NCBI RefSeq assembly: GCF_040938485.1
Contig: NW_027271394.1
Span: 2,170,001 to 2,234,000, forward strand
Reading direction: 5' to 3'
DNA: 64,000 nt
DNA from: Diadema antillarum
Taxonomy: Eukaryota
The position numbers and the translations under genes were made by a program. The notes beneath the pieces were generated by a model, which was not told where the DNA came from, did no database searches, and saw nothing but the letters and a program-made list of their open reading frames with translations. Below are positions 14,463 to 51,543 of this stretch, piece by piece (position 1 is the stretch's first letter; every line of letters starts with the position of its first letter).

Positions 14463-14494
14463 TCAGTTCAAGATTTTGTCCTCATAAAGTCGTT
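14463..14494 (-). CDS. Candidate terminal cytoplasmic exon (ERLYEDKILN*), middle gene copy
   Basis: Strong acceptor gttttccttgtctttcAG, present in both units, with the phase-1 frame open to a stop. The frame is ambiguous if an intervening micro-exon (~14826-14861) is used. Confidence 0.45.
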
Positions 14495-15278
14495 CTGAAA
14501 GACAAGGAAAACATGTGATGAATGTTTAATGATTTATACCTCCAAACAGCAGCGTGTTGCTGATAATGTTCTTCTACTATACATGCATTACATAAGTCTA
14601 GGGATACAAAGATACATGCCTCTATGACAAAGAAAGAATGACATATATTTCTGAGCAAAACTGGAAAAATGACTGGGAATGAAAGTTAAAGTAAAAACAA
14701 GATCAGTATAAAATTGAAGTCTCCGGGTTCTAGGTAAACAAGGAATTGGCCTATTGATCTAGACAGCTAATTTTGGATTGCTTTATCTCATATGGAATGA
14801 GTTACCATTACTGAAGTGTTCATACCGTCTTTTCTTCTTTCTTAATTTTTAAGATTGTTTTCTATTGAAATTAAGTATGTTTGGGGATTAAATGAGAAGG
14901 CAATGAGTAGATATCTTTGAGTTGGGTACTATCTGCGTATCCCAATAGTAGGAGCTCAACGCTTTTCTCTCTTCCAACGAATGCTACCTATTCCATTCGC
15001 AATAGCAAAATGTGTCCTGAAGTTTTAAGGCTTTAACTCTTAAACATTTTCGATGTATTCTGCCCAGCCTTTTAGGTTGTACCTTTCGTCAAAGAATTGC
15101 CATTCGGCGATCGTTTGCTTACATGCCCTATGATTTCTCAAATGTAGCTCAGACTAAGTTCACAAACATTGTTGCCTGTTTCTGAATTGTTTCCAAATGA
15201 AATGTCCTATAAAGACAAAGCCGGGATACAACTGTATATTCGCATAAAACTCTTTTCTGTCACAGATTCCAGACAAAC

Positions 15279-15413
15279 CTGTTACTTTGGGCGTGTCTTT
15301 CTTCCTCTGCATGACGGTGACGACGCACACCACAACAGCGAGAACGAAAAGGACGATGAGGAGGGCGTACGTTGTCGACATTGTTTGCAGGATTCCAGTT
15401 ACATGTACGAAGT
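15279..15413 (-). CDS. Transmembrane exon 2 (DFVHVTGILQTMSTTYALLIVLFVLAVVVCVVTVMQRKKDTPKVT), middle gene copy
   Basis: Hydrophobic stretch followed by the RKK stop-transfer motif. Acceptor ttctccAG, donor GTTTGT, 135 bp phase 1-1. The units differ by a frameshifting indel just past the donor, consistent with intron. Confidence 0.85.
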
Positions 15414-16276
15414 CTGGAGAAACAGACAGACAGACAGACAGACAGACGGAAAGGCACGTTATGGCGTTTTATGAATGATTTCGTAATTTCATCAGATTGC
15501 AGTTCTCGTTTGTAACCACTGGTAACCTACCAAGATGAAAATAAACTTGGTGTGTACGATCGCACAACACCGAAATTAAAACGTCCCGTCTTGAAACGTA
15601 TTACATTGTCACCGTCTCTCTAATAAGTGGTCGCTACCATATGATCTGACATTGCAGTAAATGTCAGCGTAAAACTACGTTTAAATTCCTAGTCCTATCT
15701 CAAATTGCACAAACATGGTAGTTCATTTCACCAAGAATCGTCATGTATTAGCACTATCTTAAACATTTATTTTAGAAGTTATGTAACAGATATTATGTCT
15801 ACACATGTTATGTTCGTTGTGCTTATCTATAACCGACTACCATACGTAACTGGACATTAAAATTCTACTCAAATAGAATACGAAACGTTGTCTTTTTCAC
15901 TCTTTTGTTATGTGATTTGATATGATGCATTTTTCAGTTCTCTCAGCCTCTGTCTTCATCCGATCTAACAAAACAAATCCCATGCAAACTTTAGGTGTAC
16001 TCGAACATTGGCACTACTATATTTTGCGTCGTACACAAATATATTAAATATGCTGCTGACATATATAAGGATTTTTAGCTTCTGAGAAAGAAACGTATGC
16101 AGGCCTATTCTCTGTTTTTATGATATAGAGCTTACCCTGTGTAAGTTGTAAAACGAAAGTGGGAAATGGTCGAAAGTAATAGACAAACTCAATATCATTC
16201 TTCGTCTTATTCAAGAGTAAACAGATGTTATATCCACGAAATTTGTGGATGATATTGTTGTTTACCAAACGCCTAC

Positions 16277-16540
16277 CAGTTGGACAATAAATTTCCGATG
16301 CAGTGATGAAACCGAAGTCGTTGAGGGCGCTACAAGTGACAGAGACACATTTCACAGGTTTGGGGCTGAGATAGACCCACGGAGATCTGCCCCTCGAGAG
16401 CGTCAGGTTGTCTGCTGTAATCACGTACTGGTGGAAATCAGGGTGGGGTTGGTAATCTTCGGTCACGTGACACAAAATTACGACAACCGTCACATTGTCA
16501 TCGGACGTATACTTGGACAACTTGATCTCAATCACATCAT
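16277..16540 (-). CDS. 4-Cys Ig-like domain exon 8, middle gene copy
   Basis: DDVIEIKL..VVILCHV..YQPHP..PKPVKCVSVTCSALNDFG..YCPTG. AG/GT boundaries, 264 bp. Confidence 0.85.
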
Positions 16541-16875
16541 CTGTTAAAGTATTCAGGAGACATTAGAGAAACAAGCGAGTATGAGTGCACTGAAGTCTGA
16601 GAGAGTTTATGCCTGTCTTCATGAAAGCAGTATACCTACTCACACTGGATGGTGATGTAAACAACAACAAAGATTGTAAAGTTGTGAATATGAAAAGAAT
16701 GAAATATGCAATCTTCATTGTGTTCGAAGTACTCACTGTGCAGTAATAGTAATGAAAGTGACAAATAGCAGTTATTTTCCAAGTTCTTTTACACCGGAGG
16801 ATGACCGCCATCCACCATAGTTCAATATGTATAGACGCGATGAGCGGCCGTACATCTTTGAAAGTATCGAAGTAC

Positions 16876-16956
16876 GGACACGGACACGGACATGAGGAAG
16901 AACAGCCGTCTGGCTGAATCATGTGCCGAGTTGAAATAAATAAATGAAATAAATGA
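16876..16956 (+). mobile_element. 81-bp retroposon 3' remnant with 6-bp TSD, unit A only
   Basis: aagtac on both sides with an aaataaataaatgaaataaatg tail; single aagtac in unit B (~49537). Confidence 0.6.
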
Positions 16957-17061
16957 AAGTACAGCATCGTCAAAAGAATGAAAGCGCAACTCTTTATACG
17001 ACTAATTGGATTAGGGGATTATAACTCATCGTCTGTGTTAAGAAAGTCAGATATCACGTAC

Positions 17062-17331
17062 CTCTGGGACAATGCAAACTAAGAGAGGTTGTTAACCCAT
17101 GGACATTGCTTCCTGTGCATCTGATGTTGAGACACCTGTTCTGATGTGACGTCACAATGGCAGACGTATTTGTTGAAGAGACGATCATGCTTTCACCGTT
17201 TACCTCGATACCAAAAATGTTGATAGGATGTTTTGGTTGGTTCGACGAATCGATAGAACAGGTGATGTTAATATTGGTGGTATCCGTGTCGTTTTGAAAT
17301 TGAATTGAGATCAGACCTTCTTCCGGTGGAT
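17062..17331 (-). CDS. 4-Cys Ig-like domain exon 7, middle gene copy
   Basis: DPPEEGLISI..INITCSIDSSNQPKHP..RCLNIRCTGSNVHG..HCPRG. AG/GT boundaries, 270 bp. Confidence 0.85.
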
Positions 17332-18454
17332 CTATCAAGATCAAGTGTAATGGGTGAATGGCAGTAGTAGAAATAAGGAAGATACGACTTTCTGCCACAA
17401 ATGTTCATAATAACTTCAGTGCAAGTATACACGATAAAAGATTTCATGAACATTGACACGAACCTCCAGTTGTGATGGAATACGTCAATCACTATAGAAC
17501 TCAACATCAGAAAGTTTAACACATTCTCTTCTTAAAGTAGAATTGGATAAGGCTCCTTTTACGAGTCTTTCACGCAGATGTTTTTGTTTTTCAGATGTTA
17601 TACTTGAATATTGTGATTGAATATGTAACTGGTGTTTATCTGTAAGCCTCGATATTGTATCTTCGTCTTGTTCTGTTTTCTTTCTCTTACTACTCTAGTA
17701 AACTGAGAGATTTAGTTATGACACCGCCAAGTTTTAACTTTCAAAAAGTCTTGTAAAGTTTCGCTTTGAAATGTGTAGACCTCCAGGGTCAAATCTAAGT
17801 TCACATTCTCCTCCGATGATTTATTGGGTAACTACTACTGTATCTCACATGATGCTGGACAAGTGATGCTTTTCAAAGTTTTTTTTTGTTTCCTTTCTCT
17901 CTTGTTCCCCTTTGCTATGTAGCCTTTTTCTGTGTGCCCTGATTGGAATCTAAAGCATTTGGTTTCTTAAGGGTTTGATACGCAAATCATTGAGCTATAA
18001 AGGACAAGCCCCCCAAAAAGTTTTGCTCTTAAATATTGTTCACTTTGTTATTTACATTTTCATAAATTATCTCTCTTTTCCCTTAAACTGTCACTTGTTT
18101 ACTCAGGGGGAATCGTGACGTCTCTACAGGTAACAAAGTTTCCGGAAGATGTAGTTGTAAACCGTACAGACTGAATTGAGATCTTTTATCATACTAGGTG
18201 TTACAAAAAACATTTCCCACTTTTGATCCTTTATAGTTTGAAAACTAAGGATAAAAAGTATGAAATGTTTTTTTTTTTTAACACCTAGTAGTTTTTCGTA
18301 ATGACAGCACGCGGTTATAGCGATAAGCCAAAGAGAATGAAAGTAACATGTCAGTATTATACATATATGCGTACATGTACATTACAATTAAGGAAAACAC
18401 ATCCACACATCTATGACACAAGCACGCGTATGATTTGATTTAAATCTACTTCAC

Positions 18455-18730
18455 CTGTAGGGCAATATGTTTCCGTAGTGTTTGTCGAACCGAGATCGTT
18501 GGTTCCAGTGCAAGTTACTACGGTACAGTTTTCAGGCCTTGTCGATATAGTGGTCGATGGCCTGGTTGACAATGATACAGTCTTCTTTCCAACCTTGACT
18601 TCGAAAGTATGCAGTGGAGGATGAAGCACAATCGTTTCATTTACGTGACAGTTTATGACCAATATTGGTTGCTTATTTTTGCCCAGTTTCTCTTCCAGCC
18701 GAATGTCGATTATTGCAGGGCCAGGTGGAT
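18455..18730 (-). CDS. 4-Cys Ig-like domain exon 6, middle gene copy
   Basis: DPPGPAIIDI..LVINCHVNE..RPENCTVVTCTGTNDLG..YCPTG. A (CT)n tract precedes the acceptor; 276 bp. Confidence 0.85.
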
Positions 18731-18756
18731 CTATTAACATGTGTTCCAAAGAGAGG

Positions 18757-18787
<31 letters not shown>

Positions 18788-19238
18788 CCAAAAACAAAAG
18801 AAAAAAAGGGAGCGCATCTAGATATGATCTGTCAACACGTAACATTGAAAATGTCGCAGTCATTAAAGACAAGAGATATACACATTAAAGTGATTTGGAA
18901 GAAAAGAATGAATAAAGGCAACTATGGTATCTTACCTTTACGGCAAGAATTTCTCGGAGTAGAAATAAAATGATGTTTGTCGGTTTTCATGAAGCAATTT
19001 CCGCCTTTTTTGTTGTTGTTGTTGATGTTATGTGCTTGAATGTATAATCTATCTCTTGAGCACTTAATTGCATCTAAACTTCAACTGTGAATGGTTAATC
19101 AGGGGGAACCAAAAAAAAAGCCTATACGTTTCAAGGTTGACATATTAAACATGAATGTTCCTTCTGATTCTAGTCTTAAGAAGCCAAACGAAAAATGCTG
19201 ACGTTGGTGCAAGCATCCTACAATTTGCATCCCCTCAC

Positions 19239-19508
19239 CTCTTGGGCAGTAGGTCTCGATAGAAGAAGTCGACCCATAGTCATTCTGACCAATACAAGTG
19301 ACGTTCATGCACCATTCGGGGCGGGGTGATAGGATGAGAGAGCTTGTGTTAGACTCCGTCCCAGTCTCCGTTTGGATGATGAAAGTGTGCAGACGAGGAA
19401 ACGGCTGGTCTCGCGAGTCCACGTGACAAGTGATGGAGAGGTTGACTGTAGTGCTGGGTAGTCGTTTCTCCAGCAATTCCACAGATATTATATCGGCGAC
19501 AGGCGGAT
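19239..19508 (-). CDS. 4-Cys Ig-like domain exon 5, middle gene copy
   Basis: DPPVADIISV..LSITCHVDSRDQPFP..RPEWCMNVTCIGQNDYG..YCPRG. Donor GTGAGG, 270 bp. Confidence 0.9.
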
Positions 19509-19645
19509 CTATGAAAAAGTCAAGTTAAAGAATTACTCAGTTAAAGTGATTATTTCGAGTATGTTTGCTTCAAACTTAGTTTAGCTTTATCTATCTAAAA
19601 GAGTATAAGGCTAACTTGTTATAGGTGACTTACACCTGATATTAC

Positions 19646-19898
19646 CTTTTGGACAGTATATTGTGGATGCTGTTGTTTCCAACACAAGACACTTGGATAC
19701 ACCATGTAGGACGAGGTGATATGGTAGTGCGAGGAGATGAAGACAAAATGACGTCATCAGCCGAGATGACGTAAGACTCGATAGCCGGAAAGGGTTTGTC
19801 CCTGGAAATCACGTGACATTCGATGTCGAGGGATATTTGGTTCTGAATGTCTACTTGCTCATGAAACCTGATGGACAGTGTGCCGTTTAATGGAGGAC
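19646..19898 (-). pseudogene. 4-Cys Ig-like domain exon 4, frameshifted in the middle gene copy
   Basis: 253 bp versus 276 bp in the paralog (53093-53368). It has a 6-bp in-frame deletion plus a 17-bp deletion (ttcgccaatcccgttgc) that removes the NGIG motif and shifts the frame. Confidence 0.85.
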
Positions 19899-21218
19899 CT
19901 AAGTGTGAAATTGAAATAAAGATTCATATCATTCACATTAACTGCTTCTTCTCCTCTCAGAAATTTCACGAAAACTGACGAAGATGAAAACACGTGATCA
20001 CTGATTATCATGATTGTCTCCTTCAGCTGTGCATACACCGCGTCTGTCAAGACGCATAAACTGATTTCAAGATTGACGATTTTTAAATATCATTTAAGAT
20101 ATGTAATGGTAAGAAAGGATTGGTGTGAAAAATTTGGTACCTCAAATTACATTCACCATTAAGCTTCAATATCTGGATCTCAGGAAGCAAGCATGTTCAT
20201 GAATTTTGAGTTATGACCGCAGCTTTCGTACATTGCCTATTGAATTTCTTCGTAATTCCTGCTTCTTGTTCTTAGCAAGATGTGCTTATGGAAAATAAAC
20301 GATACATGGATATGCTGTTGCCGCTTTGCTTTTGTGATCAAACTGTTTATATCTTACAAGAGTAAGGCAGTTTGTGGTACTTGGATACAGTAATGGAATG
20401 TGTAGATATTGATGAGGAGGTCACTGCGTTGATGATACTGTTATCATTATTATTAGGTATGCTTTTATCAATACTGAAATATGCCCATCTCGTCACTTTT
20501 TATTCAGGTGTCTTTTTTTCTTCATATCATGTTGGAGTACTCAATTATTAGCTCACGAAGGATTGGTCAAATTGATCAATGACATATATTCCATGTGGAT
20601 AACTCACACAGACGAATGTATATCATACAGAACTCATGGACCAACAAACCACACACACACACACACACACGCATACAGATACAAGACGTAGATTCATGAA
20701 AAAAGACACTCATACAGATGTACAGCTACACACATAGATACGTCATACATAATAACATACACTTGTATACCTACATGTGTTGATTCGCACAAAAGTCATG
20801 CTTACATAGTATTATTATCATTATTATTATTATTTCCATGTATCATAGGTGTAACGATATCTTTCAATGTAGTGAAAATCTAATATTTGTTTTGTTTCTC
20901 ATTTCTTGACGATAATACATTTATCTCTGTGACCAACTTGGATGGTACTTCAGGATGAATTTGATTGTATATTATTTGTTTTGTTTCTCAATTCTTGACG
21001 ATAATACATTTATCTCTGTGACCAACTTGGATGGTAGGGCCTACTTCAGAATGAATTTATCTCCTCAATTATCTCCTTTCATATGACATCCTATTTTGGC
21101 CTAAACCAATGAGGTGCATCTGCTGTACAATGACTAAGCATTCAATTGATCTTGATGTTATTATAAAGCTGCCTAAATGGCAATTGATAATTACGTTTAA
21201 GAAATCTTGTTCTACACG

Positions 21219-21221
<3 letters not shown>

Positions 21222-21263
<42 letters not shown>

Positions 21264-21310
21264 TGTATCATATATATGTATATATGTATGTGTGTGTGTT
21301 CGCGTCCACG
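21222..21310 (+). repeat. (TA)n/(TG)n microsatellite
   Basis: Read directly; the homologous site in unit B is an N gap. Confidence 0.9.
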
Positions 21311-23633
21311 CGCGTGCGTGTGTGTGAGTTTGTGTACTAATGTCATCATTCATGAGTTACGATTCACTTTTAATAACTTTCAACATGAATTTCTCGCTAT
21401 ACGTTGGTGTTACAACTATCTTAGTTTGTTCGTCACAATTTTCAACACTCATGTTGATTTTTATTTTTATTTTTTTTTTTTTTACAGAGAGGGTTGATAT
21501 ATATACCACGAACACCGAATCAGAACTACACATACATTCGGTTTCTCTGTTAAACCAGCAGTTTATTTATTGACGTGACCATCACTCACTAAGATCACTG
21601 CGGGCCATGCAAAAAAAAATCAAAAGAATATTACATCTTATTTATGGAAAAGAGAGAGAGGATGAACACATAAGACACTATAAAAAGAACAGAAACGCGA
21701 CTGATTGCTTTACATACATTGTAAGATACTTCAAGGAAACCGAAAGTACCACCAATGATGTCATTAGAAAATAATTGCTCTACTTCGTTTCCATAATGAA
21801 AAGACATTATACAAGGCTCAACATTTGATGTAGCCCTGTGGCCCGGGGCTCCCAGAAATAGATGTTGGGCAACCACTTAATAACAAAGTATATGTTTGTG
21901 AGCCCTTTTAACATACCTGCCAATTTTCGCATAATTGTCAAGGTTCTTAGTCATTTTAATTTTCTTATGTGTTACTTTCTTACTTCTTAGTCACAGTACG
22001 TGGTATTTGACACACATTGTCGAACATGTAAATATTCAAACAGTTATCATGATTTATTGTATTATCTTAATGTTTTATAAAAATAGTTCTTATTTTTCGG
22101 GCCATAAAAAGAAAATGCAATTCAATTATTCTGATGGCCCCAATGGGCCCCAAAAGAAAAAGTTGATATCGAGCCTTCTATTTTATATCATACACATCTA
22201 AGTAATGTGACGTAGAATTAAATCATATGAAGTAAAGTAGCTTCTTAATCAGTTCTATTTCTGTTTTCGACCGCCAATACATGAAACTAAAATTAACATA
22301 GTGACGGCATAATTAAATGAATTATACCCATCAATATTCATTATATTGTGTTTCAATTAGTCAAAACGTATTAAGTAAAAATACAATGCGATGTCAAGTT
22401 GAAGGTACACTATATAGCAGAGAAAATACTTTGAACAAGGTTTTGAGAAATTAATAATTTTGACAAGCAGAGGACCATCTTCATAAGCAAAGCTTGACTG
22501 GGAAAATGGCCTCAGATAATGTTGCAACATAAAATAAACTATCACAAAAGTACGCTATAGACATTGCCACTCACTATATAAAGTGTAATCAGCAGTTACT
22601 ATAAATGTAAGTAGGCGAGAAATCATACATCTTATATCAGACTTATCAGGAATTTTGTACATCAAATCAATACACGGTAAAATTTATCGACAATACTACA
22701 ATGAACATAAGATTAACGACAGTTGCATCACAATTATTCCACTGGCTACTTGTGGTTTGAAGACGTGCTCTTCATTTCGTTTCAGGTCACTTCCAATGAC
22801 ATAAAGATTATTGATAGGCAATAGAATCTATTTTGGAAACTACAGATAAGACATAATAACATGTGAATGATTTCAGACATTGTCAGAGTGAGTTAAGATA
22901 CAAAGTGTACAAATTATGATTCTTCATTCGGAGAAAATATTGTTGGTGTGCATCCAAGGCTTTCCCTCATTTTGACCCTCGCAGCTTTCCATACCTGCAG
23001 GCAAATGTCATAAAGGGATCTTAAAATTGTTGCCAAAGACATATAAACATGCGGGATATGGTGTCAACTGAAGATAAACAAATATTGTAGGCAGTACTGT
23101 GTGTTCTCAACAAAACCAAGTTTGTCTACAGAAAGGTAGTTCGTAGCAGTCAATTAAAGAATATTACTTGAGGCACTTCTGCGGTAGGAAAGTGAAACGC
23201 AATAAAGGCAGTGAATATACATCTAAAATGCGACAAGAAAATAAATCGTGAAAAGGGGGACATGGTATATCTATCTTTTAATGCAATAAAATCTTAAGTC
23301 ATTGATGAAATGTAAGAGTAGCAACATAGATGAAGCTAAGCGTGTTCTAAAATGTCTATGGAGGAACACAGCATGTCAAACCAACGAGTGTATTTTTTTT
23401 TTCCCCGATGAAAGACAATATCCTCATTTCTTTCGATTACCGATTACCGCTCGTCTGCATCTCTCATAATTGTATCTGGGCAATGATTCAAGTTAAGTTT
23501 ATCCAGGAGTATCAGGTTTTCTTGCCAAGTACTAAACCTAGAAAGTAGTAAGTAATTGTGCATTCTACTTGATAAATTTTTCAAAGCGCACGGATTCAGT
23601 AAATAAAACACGCTATGAATATACTCACCTCAA

Positions 23634-23767
23634 TCAAAAGACATTTTTTCTCTTCACGAGGACAGTGAAGCAGGTGATGATGGAGAGGATGAAAACGACG
23701 ACGAGAAGAGCGTACGTGGTCGACGATTGTTGAAGGACCCGTCGATGAGGGCTAGCTATGGGACCCC
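23634..23767 (-). CDS. Transmembrane exon 1 with stop (GGPIASPHRRVLQQSSTTYALLVVVFILSIITCFTVLVKRKNVF*), middle gene copy
   Basis: Phase-1 acceptor tttatcgatAG, hydrophobic helix, KRK, then TGA. A GTGAGT donor follows 5 nt after the stop. The STTYALL motif is shared with TM exon 2. Confidence 0.8.
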
Positions 23768-23882
23768 CTATCGATAAAGCACCAATGGACAACGGTAGTG
23801 TTTTCTTCTTCCTGTGTTAGTGTCACTGTATTCCCTCCGTACTACGCGGTTTTTAGCTTGGACTTGATAGCCAACAACTTAA

Positions 23883-24860
23883 TCCTATTCAGCCCAAGCT
23901 ATTTTGACCCCTCGCAGGCCCAAGGGGGGCACATTGTGCCCCCCTATATAACTTTTTTATTATTTGATGTATCATCATCATATTTGGCACGTGGGTAGAG
24001 TAACTCATACTCTACATGACCGTACGTTTTAATTTTCACAAGGTCACCCATGGAGGGCGCTATTTACAAAAATATAAAGAAATACATAGGAAATATGCTA
24101 AAAGCATGATTTTTCGGTATAATTTCTTTATCCCCATTATATATGTCTTATTATAGACCAATCATTTTCATATTTGTCACAAATGATAAGCAAGTAGAAT
24201 CTTATTATTTATGTTTGAAATTTCTCAAGGTCACCACATGGGGGCGCTATTCATATCAACATAGTGATACATTATGAGACCTGAGATGAAATGTTTGGGA
24301 TGTGTACATGTATAGTTATGACATTTCATATTTGCATAATACTGGAATTTTGAGATTGCAAATTGATAATATGATAAACTGATGATATTAGAGGCATAAC
24401 TTGGGTGAAGGAATCAAAATAACTCAAAATATAAAGGCAATTTGTAGAAAATATTATTGTTTTCAATTATCTCTATTATATCTATTGTTTAATGCCTTTG
24501 TCACATAAAAACAAAGGAAATAAAAAGAAAAAATCTTCCACGACCATAATTACTTCAAATTTTGCTTCTTCAACAAATTTCAGCCAAGAAACATCCATTT
24601 CATACACTGTAATGCTGTTAAATATAATGGGAACAGAAAAAAAGATGCAAAATCTGACTGACATGGTTGTCAGTTTATGGTTGCCATGGCAACCAGCAAC
24701 ATCAAATATAGCTAAATCATATACCAAAATGTTCGCAATAAGATTTTAGGAAAAGTCACCGAATTTGGTTGAAATCGAATTAAGGACGGAGGAGTGGCAA
24801 ACGAAAATCTCGTAGGAGGGGCACAATGTGCCCCCCCCCCCCCCCTTGGGCTTTATAGGG
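23883..24860. mobile_element. piggyBac-like non-autonomous element, unit A only
   Basis: ttaa|tcctattcagcccaag ... cttgggctttataggg|ttaa, with subterminal inverted gggggcacattgtgccc. Empty TTAA at ~63736. Confidence 0.7.
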
Positions 24861-24864
24861 TTAA

Positions 24865-25246
24865 AGGGATGGTACAGTATTGATGGAGATGAGAATTGGG
24901 CTTTTAACTTTTTGCGAGATACCAAGAAAACACTTATGATATAGTACAGAGCATACCATTTTATGAGGAATTCAAAGTTTATTTGATGAAAATCGGGTTT
25001 GGAATGACTGAAACATCCAAAAACAAAGTAAAACAAAGCGATAGTAATAAAGTGTGGGTCCCACACTTTATTAGAATCTCTCTTTTTTGGATATCTCAGC
25101 CATTTCAAAACCAATTTTCATCAAATAAACATTGAATGCCTGAGAGAATTACATGCTCTTCCATATTTCATAAGAGGTTTCTCATTATCTCACCAAAAAA
25201 TGTTAGAAACCTGAAATTAGGTCTCAACCAAAACTGTACAATCCCT
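24865..25246. mobile_element. Kolobok-like MITE, unit A only, inverted relative to 10827-11220
   Basis: ttaa|agggatggtacag ... ctgtacaatccct|ttaa; the internal sequence is the reverse complement of the 10827 family. Confidence 0.7.
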
Positions 25247-25837: not shown

Positions 25838-26137
25838 CAGAAGGAGTTTCTGTCCGGCAATGTTCCATCCATGACAACGTGTCTCCGATTCCGTTGGTCG
25901 CAGAACACGTGACATTGATGCAGGCATCGGGGAGTGGAGACAGGATCGCTGAGGCACAGCTGGAGGAGGACAAGGTGTCGTTATCAGCTGTAATGGTGTA
26001 TGTGTGGAGATGTGGGTAAGGCTGGTCAGAGAGGTCAACATGACAGGTGATGATTAGAGTTACCAGGTTTCCTTCACCTCTGATTTCCGTCGTCTGGATC
26101 CTAAGGATGTTGCTACCAGGTTGTTCGGGACCGGTTT
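25838..26137 (-). CDS. 4-Cys Ig-like domain exon 3, middle gene copy
   Basis: ETGPEQPGSNIL..LIITCHVDLSDQPYPHLHTY..PLPDACINVTCSATNGIG..HCRTETPSG. Donor GTAAGT, 300 bp. Confidence 0.9.
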
Positions 26138-27059: not shown

Positions 27060-27335
27060 CTGGCTGTGGGGGACAGTAGGTCTTGGTCATTTCAGTCTCC
27101 CCATATTCATTTATACCAGTGCACACGACATCGATGCATGTGTTGGGTTGAGGGTCTATGGTCACCGTAGGAGAAGCTGAATCGGAAATGACGTTATCAT
27201 CGACTGCAATGAGGTACGTGTTGATTGGTGGAAACGGTTGGTCTTCTGGATCCACGTGACAAGTAATGATGAGACTTGATTCAGCAGCTTCTTGAGTCTC
27301 AAACCCCACATTGATGATTCTTTCTGGTGGCTTAT
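27060..27335 (-). CDS. 4-Cys Ig-like domain exon 2, middle gene copy
   Basis: DKPPERII..LIITCHVDPEDQPFPPINTY..PQPNTCIDVVCTGINEYG..YCPPQPG. Donor GTAAAT, 276 bp. Confidence 0.9.
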
Positions 27336-27958: not shown

Positions 27959-28288
27959 CTCGAGGACAGTGTGTGAGCGTGGCTGAGGTCGTTCCAATCC
28001 CGTTCGTCGCGGAGCACGTGAGTTCGATGCAGGCGTTAGGGCGTGGTGAGAGGATTGCTGAGCCGGAGCTTGATGACGATAGAGTCGTAGAGTCAGTACT
28101 GATGGTGTAGGTGTGGAGGTACGGGGACGGCTGATCAGTGAAGTTCACTCGACAGGAGATGACCAGATTAACCAGGTTATCCTCGCCTTTGATCTCTGCA
28201 ACATCGATTGATAAGATGTTCTCTCCTGGAGGGGTACTGGGACTTGGAGTGATACATGGCGTGATGGACCGGGGTACATCGACACCAC
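27959..28288 (-). CDS. 4-Cys Ig-like domain exon 1 (with Pro/Thr-rich linker), middle gene copy
   Basis: GGVDVPRSITPCITPSPSTPPGENIL..LVISCRVNFTDQPSPYLHTY..PRPNACIELTCSATNGIG..HCPRG. Donor GTAAGT, 330 bp. Confidence 0.9.
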
Positions 28289-29277: not shown

Positions 29278-30378
29278 GGGCCGAATGCATAAATCAAGCA
29301 ATTGCTTCAAGCAAAAGCACAAGCTCGTCTAGCAAAAGGTCTAGCTCAAGCAATTGCTTAAATCCATATGCATAACCTTTTGCTTGTCCCGCACAAGCAA
29401 TTACTTGCGTTTTCAACAAAAGGAACGTCACGCCTGTGCGAACACAAGAACAAAGGCGAGTGTGACAGCATGTATTTGAAAGGATGTGTGTGTGCGAAAC
29501 ATTTCCTGACATAGCAAAAATGCGCACACAGACGCACACACACATCTTTACACACACAAGTACTGGCTGATTCCCATCACTGCTTATAGAGATAGCACGG
29601 ATCTGCCAGATCTCATGTGGAGAGAGGTCTCCTTGCTCTCCACCGAAGTCAGACATCTACCTGTTTTTCATCACACTTTGCGTGCTGACCACTGGACATT
29701 CCCGTTGTTGAAATGAAAAAGTTTCTAACACTGACAAGGAGTAATTTCTTGTAGAATTATACCACCCTGCACAAGTGTGGTCTTTCTTGTATGAATGTGA
29801 AAATAATACTTAAAAGGGAACGTCCAAGTTAAGCAAAAGCTCAAGTTCATTTTACAGAGCTTGGAAAATCGTAAGCAATTGCTAGCAAGAACAAGCAAAA
29901 GGTATGTTTTATGCATACGTTTTTAAGCAAACGCTTCGTCTCTAACGCAATTCCTTGCGGGCAGCAAGCAATTGCTTGTGCTTGCTAGCAAAAGCTCCTG
30001 CTCGCAAGCAATTGCTTGTTTTTATGCATACTCTCTAAAAAAATCGAGTGAATATATTCACTCTTAAAAGAGTGAAAACAAAAAAGAGTGCATTTACAGT
30101 GAAATTGGAGTGAATTTCAAGTGAAAATGTTCACTTTCACTCGTTTTGGAGTGACCTCAGGGATCACTCCAAAATCTTCGAGTGATCCCTGAGGTCACTC
30201 CAAAATGAGTGAAAATGAACATTTTCACTCAAAATTCACTCCAATTTCACTCAAAATTCACTCTTTTTTGTTTTCACTCTTTTGAGAGTGAATATTTTCA
30301 CTCGATTTTTTTTAGAGAGTATACGGATTCGAGTAAAAGGCTAGCACAAGTAATTGCTAGTGTTTATGCACCCGGCCC
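29278..30378. mobile_element. PIF/Harbinger-like non-autonomous element with caagcaattgctt subterminal repeats
   Basis: TIRs gggccgaatgcataaa / tttatgcacccggccc with a 3-bp ttt duplication; the palindromic aagcaattgctt occurs near both ends. Confidence 0.7.
30029..30321. mobile_element. Fold-back MITE nested in the Harbinger-like element
   Basis: Near-complete palindrome tactctctaaaaaaatcgagtgaa...ttcactcgattttttttagagagta, with core ggagtgacctcagggatcactc inverted around a ~10-nt loop. Confidence 0.85.
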
Positions 30379-30610
30379 TTTGTCATAACTCATTGCCGGT
30401 GAGCGCTATTCACATTCATATAATAGGCTTGTAACACAGTGAAGACGCACACGCAAACAAGATGTAACAGAGACCACGATTTGTTCATCAAAATTTCCCC
30501 CTGAATATTTATTTTTCATCCAATACTACTTCTCGCGCACTGTGTATGAAGTATGATATTATATTGTAATTGATTATGTTTGTACTGATGCCAAGTTAAA
30601 AAGAAATCAC

Positions 30611-30802
30611 CTGTAACCGCCAGAGTAGCAGAACGCACAACACCGTACACATGGCACTGAAGTGTATCGCCGTGGCTTGCCGTCTTTGGGGTGAATGTCA
30701 ATCTACTCGTCATGTCGTAATAAGTGAAGCGATCAACGCCGTAAGTTAGGCCTTCGTTCAAGTCTGCGTTGGCAAATATTGCGGCCGCAGCACTCAGATT
30801 CC
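30611..30802 (-). CDS. Partial Ig (C2-like) exon, C-terminal half, middle gene copy
   Basis: NLSAAAAIF..YYDMTSRLTFTPKTASHGDTLQCHVYGVVRSATLAVT carries the E/F/G-strand pattern (SxLTFTP..GxxLxC). AG/GT boundaries, 192 bp, phase 1-1. Confidence 0.8.
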
Positions 30803-31774
30803 CTATACATTGTACATTAAAAAAAAATAATGATAACGAACTCAATACATTGGTACATCAGTACAACGTCTACATCTAACATCATGCGGGAACATTTGGT
30901 CAGTATCACGTGACATATTCTCCTAAAGTAAAGACTGCACTAAAAGTATTAACAGGACGGGATATGGTGATTCTTACTTCTTGCATCTCTGTTAGCCTCA
31001 TCACTGTAATATAATTAAAGTCCTGGTTTATCATCATGGACAATAATTTATAAATACCGCAATCAGAAAATTTGTTTTTGATATATAAATTTAAATGCCG
31101 ATTTTTCACTCTTTCTGATTATTTCACTCTAAATAATAAAGCATAGGCGTGACCACATTGGAATCAGTGCATTGCATCTTAAATGTCAATGTCAGTACTT
31201 TTCCCTCTTGCTGATAATTATCGGATTTTCCAGTCATACAATGATTAATTTCATGACAAACAATGCGTTGTTTTTAACCAACACAATTCAAACTGTGTGA
31301 GTATACATGTCCCCCATTGACTGGAATTGGAAATACTCCCTTTGTGTGAGCTACAGTACTATTGTAAATGCCACTTGGGTGGGAAGGTCGAAAACAAATT
31401 ATGATGTGATATACTGATGATATTTATAGGTCTGCTAGAAATTGCAATGGCTATTCTGACATTAAAAAAATGTGACTTCAATTTGATAAAAGCTTAGTAC
31501 TAAAATGACGATGTTAGTAACCCATATCAGGTGAAATATAAACTTCAACAAACTTGTTAATGAAAAATAAATATGCCATTAATCATCAAATTTTCTGTAA
31601 TTTTGTGGTAACCACAATATCTATATAAGAAAATGTACTATTTTCCAAAAAGCTAATGAGAGTTATGTTTGGGATGATGTCAGACTCGAGATGCTATCAC
31701 GTACAGAAAGATCCGACTTACAAAACACCAACGAAGGAAAGCAGCACTATGGCTTTTGAAGAAAGAGACTAATT

Positions 31775-32553
31775 CTTCGTCCTACTAGATGTGCACGCAA
31801 TTTAGGGGTTCTTTTTGATGATCAACTGATGCTGATTGATCATATTAACAGTATATGTCGTACAGCGTCATTTTGGACTACAAAGAATTGGTTCAATTAG
31901 ACGTTATCTTGATCAATGTGCGACTGAACGGTTTATACATGCTTTTGTAATGAGTAGAATTGATAATTGTAATGGATTGTTATATGGTTTGTCAGATTCA
32001 ATGTTAGGTACACTGCAGCGAATTCAAAATTCAGCTGCAAGATTGGTTACCCGAACTCACATATATGACTCTATTTCTTCAATATTACACATGTTGCACT
32101 GGTTGCCAGTCAAAGATAGGTTAGTTTATAAGTTACTTGTAATTGCATATAAATGTCAACATCAGTTAGCTCCTTATTATTTGCAACAGCTCCTCCAAGA
32201 ATATCAACCTTCCAGACAACTTCACTCAAGCACCAAACAATTGTTAAAACCGGTTAATGTATCGACTAAGTCATATGGTCAACGATCATTTCAATATTCA
32301 ATACCTCAACTTGGAATCAACTCCCCAATTATATCAGAGAATGTTCATCATTAGATCAGTTCAAGTCTTTATTGAAGTCTCATTTGTTTGTAAAGTAACC
32401 ATTGTTCTGTAAATTGTTTAATGATGTGTTTTAAGTTGATATATATGTAATTTTCTACTTTGTATTGTGTGTTCTTACACATGTATAATCTGTCTTTTCT
32501 CATTTCAAAAAGCGCTTAGAGACTTGAATGTAATTTGCGCTCTATAAAAATGG

Positions 32554-32627
<74 letters not shown>
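31775..32627 (+). mobile_element. 5'-truncated L2-clade LINE (C-terminal part of ORF2, 3' UTR and (TTA)n tail), unit B only
   Basis: PTRCARNLGVLFDDQL..HINSICRTASF/IGSIRRYL..SRIDNCNGLLYG..LQRIQNSAARLV..LHWLPV are motifs typical of L2/CR1-group ORF2. One frameshift near 31875; absent from unit A (~1340). Confidence 0.9.
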
Positions 32628-32628
<1 letters not shown>

Positions 32629-32645
32629 CGGATGTATGAACTCAC

Positions 32646-32978
32646 GTTCTCCGGCACATGTTACGCCCACATCATCGTCGTGCCCACAACTGGAGCGATA
32701 GTTCTATGCGTAGCATCCCCACGGCCCTCTGTAGCACTCTAATAGCGAATTCAGGTCCCTTGTTGGACAGTAGATTCCATCGTCTAACCAAATAGGACCT
32801 GAGCCTTGCCCAAAGTGGGCATTGTGATGGACCGAAGCTACCGATGAGTACCCAAGCTGTCTACACACCGCGTTCCCCTCCTCAGTACCCCAACCCAAAT
32901 CACACGCCGTACCCCAAACCCCGTCACACTGTATCTCCACTCGGCCTTCATGGTCGCCGCTCCCTCCTACAAGTCTCA
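32646..32978 (-). pseudogene. SRCR domain exon with in-frame premature stop, middle gene copy
   Basis: 333 bp and colinear with 1357-1689. TAG at 32704-32706 (..GCYA*NYRSSCGHDDDVGVTC), with the frame resuming intact after the stop. Confidence 0.9.
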
Positions 32979-34312
32979 CTGAAAAATAGCGAATAACATT
33001 GGAAAAGTGTTTGCAAAATTGTAGAGAGTGAATGCCAAATCGAGAAATTCAGATTACATTGCAACTGATACTATTAAATCAAATCAAATCAAAACAAATC
33101 AAATTAAATCAAATCATATCATATCAAATCAAATCAAATCAAATCAAATCAAATCAAATCAAATCAAATCATATCAATTTTAGTGAGGTACCACCAAAAT
33201 TTCGAGTCTTGGAAAGAAATTTTCAAAACGGTTTTTGAAAACAAATATTCCTTTGTATTTCCTGTTCAAAAATACTACATACAAAAAGCATAATTTCATA
33301 TGAATGCGGAAGCTATATAGTTCAAATTTGAATAAACAGAAAATTTGAAGACTCACATTAGTACTATAGGAGTCTAAGACCTTTGATTTACATTATACAA
33401 TTCAACAAGAGATATCTTACATTTCTATGATGCCAAGTGTAACTAACAAACACTGAATAACATGCGATAAAGTGGGTGGTTTATTAACAAGATCACCATA
33501 AAAGCGTAACATTTTCATGTTTTTTTCCTTTTGACAAGATGAAATTATGGCATTCAAGGTAAATACGTTGTAATTAGACTAGGATAATTTTGTTACTTAC
33601 ACACGATTAAACTTTCATGGTTTGAAAACATTCAGTCTTTAAATGCAAAGAGATGTTATGAGAAGTGTACTACCGTTAAAAAGTAGCAAAAATTATAGGA
33701 GTAGATCAACAAGTACTTTTACAGAACCTATGCAACACAGCCTGTAACAGAAACTGGTGCCGTGCTAGAGTAGCTACATTACACTGAACTTCATCATTTT
33801 CATTTTAAGAGTTCATTTCATCATTAAAAGAGCCTTAACAATTAAGGAAAATATCACTTGTCAATACATCGGGCTTAGTAATCGTAGGTCGAAGGATTTT
33901 TTTTTTTTTTTTCAAATGAACACATATGCATTTTCTTATGGGCTAAATTAGCTTTGCAAATGGTCATGCTCATTGGGTAAATCGGTTTTCTATTTCGTTT
34001 TTGTTCAATATCACTTGAACGCAGAATATTGTGTGAGGACTTGCTCTTTCAGAACCGCAGTAACAAATTCGTTTAAAACATTGAATTTACTAGCAACTCG
34101 GTTCTACTTCATAATCCTAGTTACATTGTACTTACCTCATGCTTTGTACTGTGAATAGGTGGAATAGATGTATCAATTGACATGTAAACACACGATCAAA
34201 ACTTCCATGGAATGAGGAACACGCAAGAATCAACTACCTACCGACGATGACAGATCTGCTTGTGTGTTATTCTGGTTATTTGGAAAGAATCCATATTTTT
34301 CGCTGTACTCAC

Positions 34313-34348
34313 CAGTTCTACCATCACACGGCCGTGAGCAGTGACTGC
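34313..34348 (-). CDS. 36-bp linker exon (GSHCSRPCDGRT), middle gene copy
   Basis: Acceptor tttccgAG, donor GTGAGT. Only synonymous differences from the unit A copy. Confidence 0.8.
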
Positions 34349-37300
34349 CTCGGAAATTCAGCGTCCAATAATTCTAAGCTTGCCGCTGAGCGTCTGTTGC
34401 CATCTGCAAAGTCAGTGCTTCTGGTTCGTTGTTCTTTAATTCCTTTTTGCTCAAAATATTGTGGCAATATGTTCCAGAAATTATTCCTCAAGCTTCAGAC
34501 TTGTCTTTTAGACAATGACATCTCATATCATATCCTTGCTTTCGTTTTGCACCTTAGTTCTATATCAAATGAAGGACAATTCTTCATATGAAGACATTTC
34601 AGGAAATATTTTCGTTTCCGTCGTTCATAGAGAAAAACTAACAAACAAACAAAAATGATGAACAATGAAGTCAAAAGTAAACAATTTTACAATACATTAT
34701 GCTCCCACAGGTTAATGCCTTAGAGAAACTGTGTCTGAAACGTATAATGATCAATAACATTCTTTGATTATTACCACTTAGATTGATGAAAAGTTGATCT
34801 ATTTGACTAAAATGATTTATGGTGTCTATCAAATTTCTCTCACATAATCACAGAAATACGATTAAAACTCAGCAGCAATATTGTCTTTTACTACAAAAAT
34901 GACCCATAATACCCAGTCATGGCTGTCCATTGCACATAATGAACAGGAATTAGTATTTTGAGTTAAGACATAACTTACACGCAAACCTATGGGATCCTAG
35001 GGCAGAAAAAAACCTCCTGATTTTGAATAGATTTATTCTTTTACATAACTCACATCAATTCATATCCGACTAAATAGGTAATAATCACAAAATAGGTATT
35101 GTTATCTTTCTGTCACACCTTTTCAGAACCAAAACGTCTAAGATGAAAAGATTGACCGACATCGCTAGGTACCCTTAGAGAGTACGTTGACAAAAGAACA
35201 TTATCTTCCTTTTGCTACATGTAGGATACGTGGTGTGTATTGTCCTCGATCGACACGCTTTTCATGACAGATTATCATGACTTATTATTAGCTCAAGCAC
35301 GTCGGTATTTCATCTTATGCCACTGTATATCACAAAACAGTATTTTTTGTTTGCGTTTTAACAAACTGAAAGAGATATTATAGAAGATGGTTGGAGAACC
35401 TGCCTGATATTACTAAATTATTAACCCTGATGTACTGCATGATGCTTTAACGGAGTAAGAGACAAAAATGCAGGATATTTCGTCCTTTTTAGCTTCACAC
35501 AAAGGGTTTTCATATTAACCACTCCTAAAAGGGACGCTTTTACTAATTCGCATCGAGTTGTTGTACTTACTGAGTAGTTAATGTCTTATTTGCTCTTCTA
35601 CACTAACGAAAACACACCCGACATTCGTATGTAACTTACGGACAGCATCAGACAACGTTAGAGCATGACGAAAAACTGTGAGCTCTAAAGGGTGATGAAG
35701 TCCATCTCATTGCTTACAAAAGCTTCCTGTCTTGACGGTTATAATCGTTCTGGTTTATTAATATCACGTTAAATATGCGATGATGATTGGGAGGCGATTA
35801 TGACGTAAACAAACATTTCTCCGTTTCACCCTAGGTATATCCTTAGGTAGACCGTTGTCAGTGGAAGCTGTTCAGTCTTTTAACTCCCGATGAAACCTTG
35901 GTCGCATGTCTCGTAAAATCTGAAGATTTTACGGTAATTATAAGTAATATCAAAATTTCAAATTGTCGGTAGTAGTCCTTGTACTTCTATCTTGCTTATT
36001 GAGCACTCTTGAAAGAAATGCTTGCTTGATGTAAAAATGGGGGACAGATTACAACTCCTTCCACTCGCATGAGACCAAAGTTCATTTCCGTCGCCTTTCG
36101 TACCTTTATTAGAAATTATCGAATTAATGACGAGAAAGTTATTTTGAGTGTGTTTGATATGAAGTATAACAATCAGTGGTAATGTCTCTTATTGGATGCA
36201 TTGAACACTATACGTAGCAACATGCTTCCAAATGCATGAAGCTCGTGTTCAGAAGATAACATTGGAAAAATGAGGTTTATTTCGCGTGGGCATAAAACAT
36301 CTCCTGACTGTACCAGACAGTCGTATTTTGCGAGGGTTTAACCGGTGCAAAATGGACACATAGACACCACGTAAAATGGGAGGAAGAAAAATCAATTCTT
36401 AGTGTAACGGAAATGGCGGCATTTTAAGTATTTAGAGGTTTCTATGTAAGGTGACATTATGACTTATGTAAGGTTGGTTGTAACCGTAATTTGTTTCAGA
36501 CATGTTAGTCGACTTAATTCTTATTTTCAAATTGACGTCGTCCTCTCTATAATATCCTTAGAGAGTCCGATGAGGGAGTGGAAAATTTCTGCCTTCGAAG
36601 CCTTACACCAGATCGAGGGGAGGTGCTAGGTATATCCGTTTTTTCTGGTTTAACGATGAAAACCATTGTTTCAATATTCACACATTATCTTGTCAGAGAT
36701 ATCCCCGACTGATTTCATGTGTTTTTCTAACAGTATTGCTCAATCGCGGTACCTTAAATTCGATTTGAAAGAGTGTGGTGATGTATCTGTGTGAGAGTTC
36801 ACTTCCGTCGCACAAAACTATGTATCGTTGACTCTGTGTTTTGATTCGAATGAGGAGCGGATATTCCATAATGATGAGTCATCTAATTTGGTTCGGGTAT
36901 CCCAAATGATTATTATCTGCGGATGGAACTGAGGGAAGAAGTTTTTATTTAATATTGAATGCATTTTGATTGGCTCAGCCGGTAGAATTATGCAAACAGA
37001 TTCTTGTGTTCATTATGTCCAATGTTTTGCACCCCTTTTACTGTTTTATCCCTGATGCAAAACTTTCATACCAAGCAAGAAATATTAACCTTGCCATCAC
37101 TTTTTAAAGGGCTTATCAAAGTCATAAACAACGTAGTAAATTCTTAGTTTTAAAGCGAGGTTATTTCTAAATTTCCCTGGAATGTGAATTGTTTCAGCTC
37201 ATAGTCATGCCAATGTATATGTTACATTTCTCCTTCCCTTGCTATTTTGCTATATCGCCAACAGTATATTAATGAGCCATATCGTAATTAGCTTCTGTGC

Positions 37301-38892
37301 AATTTGGAAGATGATTTTTCATTTTTTTCTCAATTGGCTGGGCACTTTTAAAAGCAACGTAAAAGCTTTTCCAACGAAACAATCTGTGGAGTTTATATTG
37401 AAATAAAGAATAAACTTGCGCAGACCAAATGACCACAAAGGCCTGTCAATTATCATTATTAACACTAAACTCTTTGGGAACCATTCATTTCATTGATTTG
37501 CATTTAACGCATTAACAAACTACAGGTGTATATGTATATTTTTATTTTCAAATACTTAAGGTTTTGATAAACATTTTGTTGCTGTCATTTGCGCTTGCAC
37601 CCACTATTCATAAGGCATGGTGTAAGGGTTACATGAATAGTCATTACATCACATATGTTCATCTCAGTGAATTAAAAAAACACCAAAATGCCTGTTATGG
37701 CAAATGGCTCTTTTCTGCTCATGCACACGGCGAAGTGGCTGATTGTTGTTGCTTTCATTTATATGTTACCAGCAATGTTATCTCAGTTTGGAAGGCAGGC
37801 CGTGTTTACAGTGTGAGATTGTGGTCGTCTGATATTCAGTCTTTTCAGAGTATATTGAAAATGAGGTGCTGAACAGTTTGCACTGTTCAATAGTGCAATA
37901 TAGAGGAGGTTAAATGTTTGTGTCTCTGAGTAAAAGGTGGCATATGTCGCAAGCAGAAAAAAAAAGGATTTTTAGAATATCTTATCTTATTATCTAGATA
38001 ACAAGGGAGTAAAATTTTCTGAAAATGCCCCCTTAGATTGTACCTTTAAATCATTTTATGTACCTTTATATCATTTTCTTTATTATCGATGTACCGTGTG
38101 ATTTGTATTGTCAATACTTTGTATTCGCCAAGTCCATTAATTCTTCTTTTCATATGATATGTACGAAAGAAAAGTGTATCTATACATATCGGTTGTTATG
38201 AAATTGAAGAAATAAATAAATGTCAAATCAAGTCAAGTCAAATCAAGTCAAATGTTTTTCAAAATATACGAAGTCAGCGTAGCACAATCAGTTCATGAAT
38301 AAATCTATCGCGACTGATTTTTTTTTTTAAATCAGTAGAGTAAGAGAATCTTAATTCTGAAACTTTTCATGGCTTATTGTGTTTGTAAGTGTTTGAGTGT
38401 GTATACTGTGTAGGTGCTCGTTGATGTGTAGAGGGGAAATGTATTCTTTATTTTCATCGAAAGTCCTCGACAAATTTTGGAGGAACTGCACAGGTAAAGG
38501 CCGTCCGCAATAATTAACGCTGAACTACAATGAAATTGTGAAATCTGAAAAGACAAAGTGAAAATTTTGATTTGTCGTTATTAGTACATAACTATAGGCG
38601 GTGATATGAAATTATAAGAGTGTCGATTTTCAATTTGTCTTAATGATTGCAAAATAAACGTATTTTATATAATGCCTTCCCATGTACACATGTGTTGCGT
38701 TCGACATCTCCAAAATGAACCCGTTCTGTCTTATTTCATGCAGCTTGAAAGACCTTGGAAAGGGAATCCCACTCGTCATCTGACGTCACGGGTTTGAAGG
38801 ACGGCGCGACATTCTGGGCAACGCTCCAGGGAGAGGAATGCGCGAAGGATGGCAGAAAATGATGCCGAAATCCAACCAGATTTTCAAAAATA

Positions 38893-39194
38893 TCATGAGA
38901 ATACCAAAAAACTATGGTTAAGAATATATGAAATTAAGATATGCTCCAAACAGCAATATGAATAAGCACTTTCAAATATCGTGAACTTATGTCCATATTT
39001 TCTTTCAGACTTTCTATAATAGTGGATCAGACTATCCACTGTACTCGTCGTTTGTATGCCATCGGTAATCTGTACGCCATTTAAGTACCAAAACACGCGT
39101 TCTGAGCCAAACACTTTATCGGCTGTACAGACGGCTGTAACTTCCTGGTTTGGTGTCAGAGGGCTTGGTACTTCGAGAGTCACGCTGGTTCCAC
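38893..39194 (-). other. Partial Ig exon, N-terminal half only, with no good donor; middle gene copy
   Basis: Acceptor ttatttAG, then GGTSVTLEVPSPLTPNQEVTAVCTADKVFGSERVFWYLNG, running to a stop at 38893. Confidence 0.7.
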
Positions 39195-39634
39195 CTAAAT
39201 AAGATAATAACAGAAGAAAGGAAAAGAGAATAATGCGGCTTGATGGACTTTAATACGACAAAAATCACCTTACTTGAAATTCACTCGTCCAGCTTTTTTT
39301 TTTCAGGGACCAGATGTAATTGTCCTTTTAATAAAAAAAAAGAAAAAAACAATTAAAAACTCCAACAATTTACCACTTTTCAAACTATTGCACAAGCACT
39401 GTCATTTGAATGATTTCTTTGTGTGTGTGTGTGTTTTCCCCCTTGGATCCGATATCTCATTTGTTTTCTCTGTTTATACAAACGTACTTTAAAAAAGAAC
39501 AAAAAGAATCCCTGAGAAGTGGAGTATTTACACAAAACTACAGCAACCAATTGAATTAGCAATTGAGCCATAAGTCCAAGACTAAGTTTGCTGTGAAATA
39601 AATATATTAAACCTTTTTGATATTCATATCTTAC

Positions 39635-39698
39635 CAATAAAGGGGATGGCGATGGATAATAGTCCAAGTAGAAATAATCTTCGTCTCTCAGCCATCAT
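39635..39698 (-). CDS. Signal-peptide exon (MMAERRRLFLLGLLSIAIPFI-G), middle gene copy
   Basis: ATG, hydrophobic core and phase-1 GTAAGA donor; only conservative changes from unit A. Confidence 0.85.
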
Positions 39699-47958: not shown

Positions 47959-48093
47959 CTGGTACTTTGGGCGTGTCTTTCTTCCTCTGCATGACGGTGA
48001 CGACACACACCACAACACCGAGAACGAAAAGGACGATGAGGAGGGCGTACGTTGTCGACATTGTTTGCAGGATTCCAGTTACATGTACGTAGT
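47959..48093 (-). CDS. Transmembrane exon 2, right gene copy
   Basis: DYVHVTGILQTMSTTYALLIVLFVLGVVVCVVTVMQRKKDTPKVP. 135 bp, AG/GTTTGT. Confidence 0.85.
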
Positions 48094-51472: not shown

Positions 51473-51496
51473 CTGTTAACATGTGTTCGAAAGAGA

Positions 51497-51543
<47 letters not shown>

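Follow-up and report, generated by a model that had tools for sequence, protein, structure and literature searches.

In the genome of the urchin Diadema antillarum, a stretch of 64,000 nucleotides (RefSeq assembly GCF_040938485.1, contig NW_027271394.1, positions 2,170,001 to 2,234,000 of the forward strand; called the window in the following, with positions counted from its first letter) contains a tandemly repeated gene unit that combines a scavenger receptor cysteine-rich (SRCR) domain, a split immunoglobulin (Ig) domain and serial copies of an Ig-like domain with four conserved cysteines. The unit analyzed here occupies the region 14,463-39,698, and all of its coding features are located on the minus strand. 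We find that the family is a lineage-specific mosaic of Ig superfamily (IgSF) and SRCR domains and that its four-cysteine domain, here called the D domain, is an unnamed variant of the C2-set Ig domain. The unit is likely to consist of two modules, each with its own transmembrane exon, and this organization is part of the explanation that we consider the best overall. Module A would comprise a signal peptide, the N-terminal half of an Ig domain, the SRCR domain, the C-terminal half of the same Ig domain, the D domains D1-D3 and a transmembrane exon with a stop codon (TMb), and module B would comprise a broken D exon (Da), the domains D4-D7 and a second transmembrane exon (TM).

The D domain, a four-cysteine variant of the C2-set Ig domain

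By motif scan and by tblastn, the D domain is detected in the unit as seven intact one-exon copies and one broken copy, and all seven intact exons (D1-D7) lie between an AG acceptor and a GT donor and are of phase 1-1. A preliminary description of this DNA, made from its letters alone, had counted eight one-exon domains; seven of these hold as intact phase 1-1 exons, while the eighth, Da, carries a stop codon and a deletion. The module measures 88-100 amino acids, and the 12 copies present in the window are 33-45% identical across types. In the alignment of these 12 copies C27, C66, C71, C87, N75, G78 and P88 are invariant, seven residues being far beyond chance, and the consensus motif given in the preliminary description is essentially right. 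Among 148 distinct Diadema domains, the cysteines assigned to the Ig strands B and F are kept without exception (148/148) and the extra cysteine pair is kept in 143, while the aromatic position of strand C is occupied by Tyr in 119, by Phe in 27 and by Trp in none. The lack of Trp had been taken as a mark of the domain; the lack is real, but it is not special, because related nectin-like domains mostly have Tyr or Phe at this position too and the Trp-less state is therefore common to relatives outside the family. A number of accepted C2-set domains also have no C-strand Trp. Furthermore, D domains carry N-glycosylation sequons.

Structure prediction with AlphaFold2 (AF2), performed from the 12-copy alignment with D4 as the target, confidently yields an all-beta sandwich of the topology shared by C2-type Ig and fibronectin type III (FN3) domains, with a predicted local distance difference test score (pLDDT) of 89.9 and a predicted template modelling score (pTM) of 0.77. 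The six main strands comprise residues 7-15, 21-29, 41-46, 56-59, 67-74 and 79-86. C27 is located in the second and C71 in the fifth of these strands, which are read as the Ig strands B and F, and the distance of 44 residues between the two cysteines equals the Ig spacing. Structure neighbours found with Foldseek and VIA include CD22, CD48, MAG, gp130 and amphioxus IgVJ-C2, with Z scores up to 9.7. With the vertebrate C2-set domains of CD22 (d3/d6-7), CD48 (d2), MAG and CD146, the D domain shares the same seven-strand sandwich (Z 7.9-8.8, with about 80 residues aligned) and the B-F cysteine pair, but the sequence identity does not exceed 14-18%, and an additional cysteine pair at the F-G hairpin and Tyr or Phe instead of Trp set the D domain apart. 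In the model, a turn of four residues connects the F strand (67-74) with the G strand (79-86); in the register of the resulting hairpin, residues 66 and 87 pair across the two strands, and a disulfide between C66 and C87 most likely staples the open end of this hairpin.

The closest relatives of the D domain in sequence are Ig domains of echinoid proteins. A search of 1.84 billion representative proteins with the domain profile returned 29 matches, and those following after the family itself are the third domains of echinoid proteins annotated as 'nectin 1a-like' or 'VSIG10-like' and then I-set repeats, with E values of 1e-6 to 6e-4 for the whole library; both cysteines and the motif C.[GA].N..G align in these matches. 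Comparison of 46 diverse D domains with six nectin-like third domains by hhalign resulted in a probability of 98.6% and an E value of 5.7e-16 over 83 columns, and the comparison with I-set repeats gave an E value of 2e-4, again with both cysteines aligned. Moreover, the ten nearest protein-language-model clusters are all Ig clusters (C2-set_2, Ig_2, Ig_3 and I-set). The third Ig domain of the nectin-like proteins, such as P0024 from Lytechinus variegatus, P0027 from Diadema setosum, P0025 and P0029, has the same length as the D domain and the same position preceding the transmembrane segment, and both share a PP..I.V start, the B-strand Cys, QP.P, an aromatic-Ile strand C and C.[GA].N..G.T in the F-G region. 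The nectin-like third domains contain two cysteines, in contrast to the D domain, and have non-Cys residues at the positions of C66 and C87; each protein contains a single such domain (P0024 and P0025 contain two), placed behind a V-set and a C2-set domain, and neither an SRCR domain nor an array is associated with it. Judged from these alignments, the second cysteine pair is a derived, Diadema-specific character, and the D domain is a putative descendant of the membrane-proximal Ig domain of echinoid nectin-like/'VSIG10-like' proteins. Nectins and nectin-like adhesion molecules are characterized by an ectodomain of V-set, C2 and C2 domains and by a cytoplasmic tail with a PDZ- or FERM-binding motif. 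The unit itself has no V-set exon and encodes a tail of only about seven residues; its relation to nectins exists only via the descent of two domains. An exact alignment of Tyr42 with the Trp of P0027 was considered and dropped, since the alignments put the Trp one column later.

Some observations speak against the assignment to the IgSF or against details of it. The structure search ties C2-type Ig with FN3 or PKD domains, and the FN3 domains of the cytokine receptor type (gp130, PTPRD) share the rank of best structure neighbours with Ig C2 domains (Z 9.2-9.7), with no sequence-profile link to the D domain; as C2-type Ig, FN3 and PKD domains have one common topology, the fold alone is not decisive. 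No Pfam match at the gathering threshold was obtained for single exons or for the 46 single D domains, whole proteins give sub-threshold Pfam Ig_2 matches only, and the best match in a profile search of solved-structure sequences, an Ig domain of SYG-2, reaches an E value of only 0.2. Four B-type D7 domains among the 148 have no C68 but retain C89, and the disulfide pattern is read from the strand register only. The module might thus be an FN3- or PKD-like sandwich with incidental cysteines, in line with the many FN3 and PKD domains that score equal to Ig C2 in the structure matches and with a weak PKD Pfam match in one of the 46 domains. We consider this very improbable, because the sequence-profile links lead to Ig domains only, the cysteines are located in the predicted B and F strands at the Ig spacing, and the domain takes the place of the nectin-like third Ig domain next to a C2-set domain. 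FN3 domains agree with the D domain in strand topology and in a similar A.N..G turn between strands F and G, but they have no B-F disulfide and possess Trp and Tyr core residues of their own; the FN3 hallmarks are absent from the D domain, none of the 46 domains matches fn3 in Pfam, and there is no fn3 language-model cluster among its neighbours. Of the Ig characters, the D domain displays the fold, the B/F cysteine pair and the phase 1-1 exons and lacks the C-strand Trp. Since all sequence-profile links lead to Ig, we regard the module as a divergent C2-type Ig domain, i.e., a variant of a known fold and not a new fold. The suggestion of an Ig-superfamily variant is thereby supported, as genuine Ig domains can be aligned with the module at the B/F cysteines and at the C.[GA].N..G motif and the language-model neighbours are all Ig.

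A Diadema-specific family in tandem arrays

The strong profile matches among the 1.84 billion proteins are confined to Diadema, in agreement with the lineage specificity proposed earlier. The species was looked up for 21 strong matches (18 representatives plus cluster members, leaving out P0013, P0019, P0020 and P0021), and all of them are 'uncharacterized protein' entries of Diadema setosum or D. antillarum, while from other echinoderms these libraries yield no more than the two-Cys relatives and unrelated SRCR proteins. The domain had also been suspected to be undescribed, and indeed it has no Pfam match, its RefSeq proteins are 'uncharacterized', the one Diadema genome paper found (10.64898/2026.05.24.727502) contains no description of it, and a literature search found no paper describing the domain family.

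The genome (1.755 Gb, 2,963 contigs) was searched with the domain profile, which returned 1,947 first-look candidates; the 150 of these that were scored all have E values of 8e-30 or lower, and 149 of them are free of stop codons. The genome thus contains at least 150 four-Cys exons on at least 30 contigs. On the contig of the window, a stretch of 365 kb contains D3-type exons at intervals of 31-48 kb, which corresponds to at least 11 units, and self-comparison of the window gives a unit length of about 32.5 kb, so that the tandem duplication noticed earlier is real.

The array units evolve under constraint. The two module B copies of the window differ by a proportion of synonymous differences (pS) of 0.105 and of non-synonymous differences (pN) of 0.029, a ratio of 0.27, with introns diverged by about 8%, and across 8-11 array units pN/pS is 0.34 for D1, 0.19 for D2 and 0.39 for D3. 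Values of 0.19-0.39 indicate purifying selection, and the label of a 'diversifying' receptor family is contradicted at the gene level. D3 is 95-99% identical across the array and even between D. antillarum and D. setosum, and gene conversion possibly acts alongside purifying selection. The two unit copies of the window (1351-23865 compared to 32640-63705) are unevenly diverged, the module A side being 79-85% identical (pS of the SRCR exon 0.36) and the module B side 90-94% (pS 0.105), which points to a difference in age or to gene conversion within the array.

Module B of the upstream unit (47870-53393, minus strand, delineated by scan, tblastn and self-comparison) comprises an intact Da', D4', a minisatellite, D5', D6', D7' and TM', and its intact domain set Da'-D7' spans 53368-48945. 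The minisatellite follows directly behind D4' (52658-52007); its period of about 85 bp is repeated in tandem about eight times, and every repeat contains the final 19-20 codons of the D4' exon together with the donor region. A short version is present in the D. setosum locus L002 (11638-11694). Moreover, the upstream unit contains about 7 kb of extra sequence between TMb' and Da' (54339-61301, with an N run at 54600-54737), compared to a spacer of 3.7 kb in the unit analyzed here.

Exon order of the unit and the reading of its genes

Module A begins with a putative exon 1 at 39532-39571, recognized by sequence reading, which contains a start codon and a hydrophobic signal peptide and ends with a phase-1 donor (T/GTAAAT); by position it aligns with the first exon of P0034, a D. 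setosum paralogue. It is followed by two exons that the preliminary description did not list and that encode the halves of one C2-set Ig domain flanking the SRCR exon. The N-half (39016-39194; strands A-C' with the B-strand Cys and the C-strand Trp) has weak Pfam C1-set and C2-set_2 matches and is 80% identical to residues 21-86 of P0034, and the C-half (30611-30802; strands E-G with the F-strand Cys) has a weak C1-set match and is 75% identical to residues 206-257 of P0034; each is collinear with the corresponding half of nectin-like C2 domains. Sequence reading of the window's N-half exon finds the usual donor at its 3' end not evident, and the orthologue models of D. setosum splice instead from an internal donor at 39129/39128, in the codon of the B-strand Cys. 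The SRCR domain is encoded by a single exon of 333 nt in phase 1-1 (32646-32978; eight cysteines; Pfam SRCR, 3.4e-18), which contains an in-frame TAG at 32706-32704. In the intron between the SRCR and Ig exons, an open reading frame of 172 amino acids on the opposite strand (31836-32354, plus strand) has the look of a transposon remnant; a transposon identity was not supported, as Pfam gave no match. Downstream follow D1 (27959-28288), which includes a Pro/Ser/Thr linker, D2 (27060-27335) and D3 (25838-26137), and then TMb (23634-23767), whose translation comprises a transmembrane helix, a basic tail of seven residues (KRKNVF) and a TGA stop, and which would be the terminal coding exon of module A.

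In module B, Da (19597-19898, found by tblastn) has lost the region of the G strand and contains a stop codon; its intact counterpart in the upstream unit is located at 53368-53094. At 19672 and 19679, loose contig ends from three sequencing runs (X1-X3) continue into the segment that is missing from Da, which implies that intact versions exist in other units or individuals. Da is followed by D4 (19239-19508), D5 (18455-18730), D6 (17062-17331) and D7 (16277-16540), the D exons of both modules being delimited by alignment and splice boundaries, with the scan in addition for all but D4, and by the TM exon (15279-15413, from its translation), which has a phase-1 donor (G/GTTTGT) and whose unspliced frame runs to a stop at 15160. 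No convincing exon for a cytoplasmic tail was detected beyond the TM exon, and the positions of poly(A) signals in the unit were uninformative. The signal peptide, SRCR domain and transmembrane exons of the preliminary description were thus recovered in part: the SRCR domain matches Pfam, but its exon contains the TAG, and TMb places a stop codon between D3 and Da.

The division into two modules is drawn from these stops and from related genes. The stop codon of TMb lies seven residues past the helix, and TMb forms the C-terminus of the RefSeq paralogue P0034 and of the orthologues P0047-49. P0034, the nearest RefSeq paralogue, consists of a signal peptide, Ig N-half, SRCR, Ig C-half, D1-D3 and TMb and ends there. 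The orthologous D. setosum array (L002, OZ188202.1:11445296-11490295) shows the same alternation of module A and module B, and Da is frameshifted in module B of L002 as well. The models P0047-49, 90-100% identical to the window exons, start in module B, skip D5 and D6, splice TM to the Ig exon of the next unit and end at TMb. Elsewhere, stand-alone B-type genes exist that comprise Ig N-half, Ig C-half, Da, D4-D7, TM and a tail (P0040, P0184, and P0005 in L003), and the window unit is collinear with such a gene plus an extra SRCR, D1-D3 and TMb.

The same collinearity could also be explained by one gene encoding one long receptor (signal peptide, SRCR, D1-D3, possibly Da, D4-D7 and TM), in which TMb would serve as an alternative terminal exon of a short isoform and SRCR and D1-D3-TMb would be the extras. 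Several points that count against two separate modules lend this some weight: upstream of module B only microsatellite-derived or weak candidates for a signal-peptide exon were found, so that module B may depend on upstream exons, which leaves room for a long form; all exons are in phase 1, and any combination would remain in frame; and the joining of exons is taken from automatic models of other species, including odd inter-unit fusions such as P0047-49 and P0164, the latter a D. antillarum model that skips TMb and runs through three units. The purifying selection on module B likewise fits a long form. The three sequencing runs cover introns and exons equally and contain no splice joints, and they are thus DNA, from other individuals. 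We nevertheless hold the long receptor to be unlikely. In both species, no retrieved model that maps to the window has an SRCR domain followed by more than four D domains, the maximum being six D domains per model in P0061 (with SRCR) and P0001 (without SRCR); no mapped model joins D3 to Da or D4; the models of the orthologous D. setosum array begin in module B and extend into the module A that follows; and Da is broken both here and in D. setosum. The two-module reading is therefore better supported, and a single receptor with eight domains, as the preliminary description had it, is unlikely in view of the TMb stop after D3, the broken Da, the TAG in the SRCR exon and the absence of an annotated relative with an SRCR and eight such domains.

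The TAG raises the further question of whether the unit, as a member of a birth-and-death array, has lost its function and is largely a decaying pseudogene. By DNA alignment the codon is a sense codon in the downstream copy of the window (1690-1352) and in D. setosum, and module A of this unit thus looks disabled. The broken Da, the usual donor of the Ig N-half that is not evident and a TAG in D3 of another array unit would fit such a decay. On the other side, the other seven D exons and both transmembrane exons are undamaged, and the pN/pS values lie far below 1. The TAG may represent one allele or an error of the assembly, and the length of 333 nt in phase 1-1 means that skipping of the SRCR exon preserves the frame. 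A largely pseudogenic unit hence appears to us to be a less probable alternative, albeit one to be taken seriously; within the two-module reading, module A of this particular unit may be non-functional or may rely on skipping of the SRCR exon.

RefSeq models also cross the borders of array units, joining TM to the next Ig exon or joining D3 to the next Ig exon with TMb skipped, which leads to proteins with an internal transmembrane segment or three SRCR heads. These models represent either real read-through transcripts or prediction artefacts in arrays of phase-1 exons. As the exons are in phase 1-1 and cross-unit splicing is annotated, varied stalk lengths and anchors could come from one locus; that the array acts as a combinatorial exon-cassette system, in which read-through and alternative splicing of many near-identical units would produce varied SRCR/Ig receptors, is a speculative idea to which we give little credence.

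Predicted product and its significance

A single C2-set Ig domain is split over two exons, and the phase-1 intron that separates them contains the SRCR exon. Both Ig halves are collinear with nectin-like C2 domains, and in an AF2 model of the corresponding head of the paralogue (P0034:22-262; pLDDT 71) the halves pack as one sandwich with the SRCR domain inserted. Residues 59-172 of this model match solved SRCR domains with Z 14.5, and single Ig domains align across both flanking halves with Z 6-7.5. The SRCR exon scores 66 bits against PF00530 (cut-off 26) and has the features of group B, being a single exon with eight cysteines as in DMBT1-like proteins, CD163 and CD6. While DMBT1-like proteins contain long SRCR runs, the unit encodes one SRCR domain per protein, nested between Ig halves and combined with an Ig-like stalk, and the part in common with SRCR relatives amounts to only about 17-20% of the query.

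The product is predicted to be a type I membrane glycoprotein. Its head would display a group B SRCR domain from a loop of a split C2-set Ig domain, and a row of three to five D domains would form its stalk, in which the extra disulfide probably adds stiffness to each domain; the stalk position proposed earlier agrees with the location of the D domains between the head domains and the membrane. By analogy with group B SRCR proteins of other animals, ligands would be bound through the SRCR domain. The tail of about seven basic residues is too short to signal alone, and signalling would need a partner; without one, the role of the protein would be adhesion, capture or shedding.

Echinoid genomes are reported to have expanded SRCR families (cited in 10.64898/2026.05.24.727502). 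With the family described here, a lineage-specific IgSF/SRCR mosaic joins the TLR, NLR, SRCR and 185/333 genes among the gene expansions known from echinoids. Its D domain is an unnamed and strongly conserved Ig subtype with a second, probably hairpin-stapling cysteine pair, represented by at least 150 exons, and possibly many more, in one urchin genus. For protein science it would provide a natural case of stalk stiffening via an extra disulfide and of an SRCR domain inserted into an Ig fold, and for genome annotation a profile of the D domain would label dozens of proteins that are currently 'uncharacterized'. As D. antillarum is a keystone species that has suffered mass die-offs, a private receptor family of this kind is an obvious candidate set for host-pathogen work.

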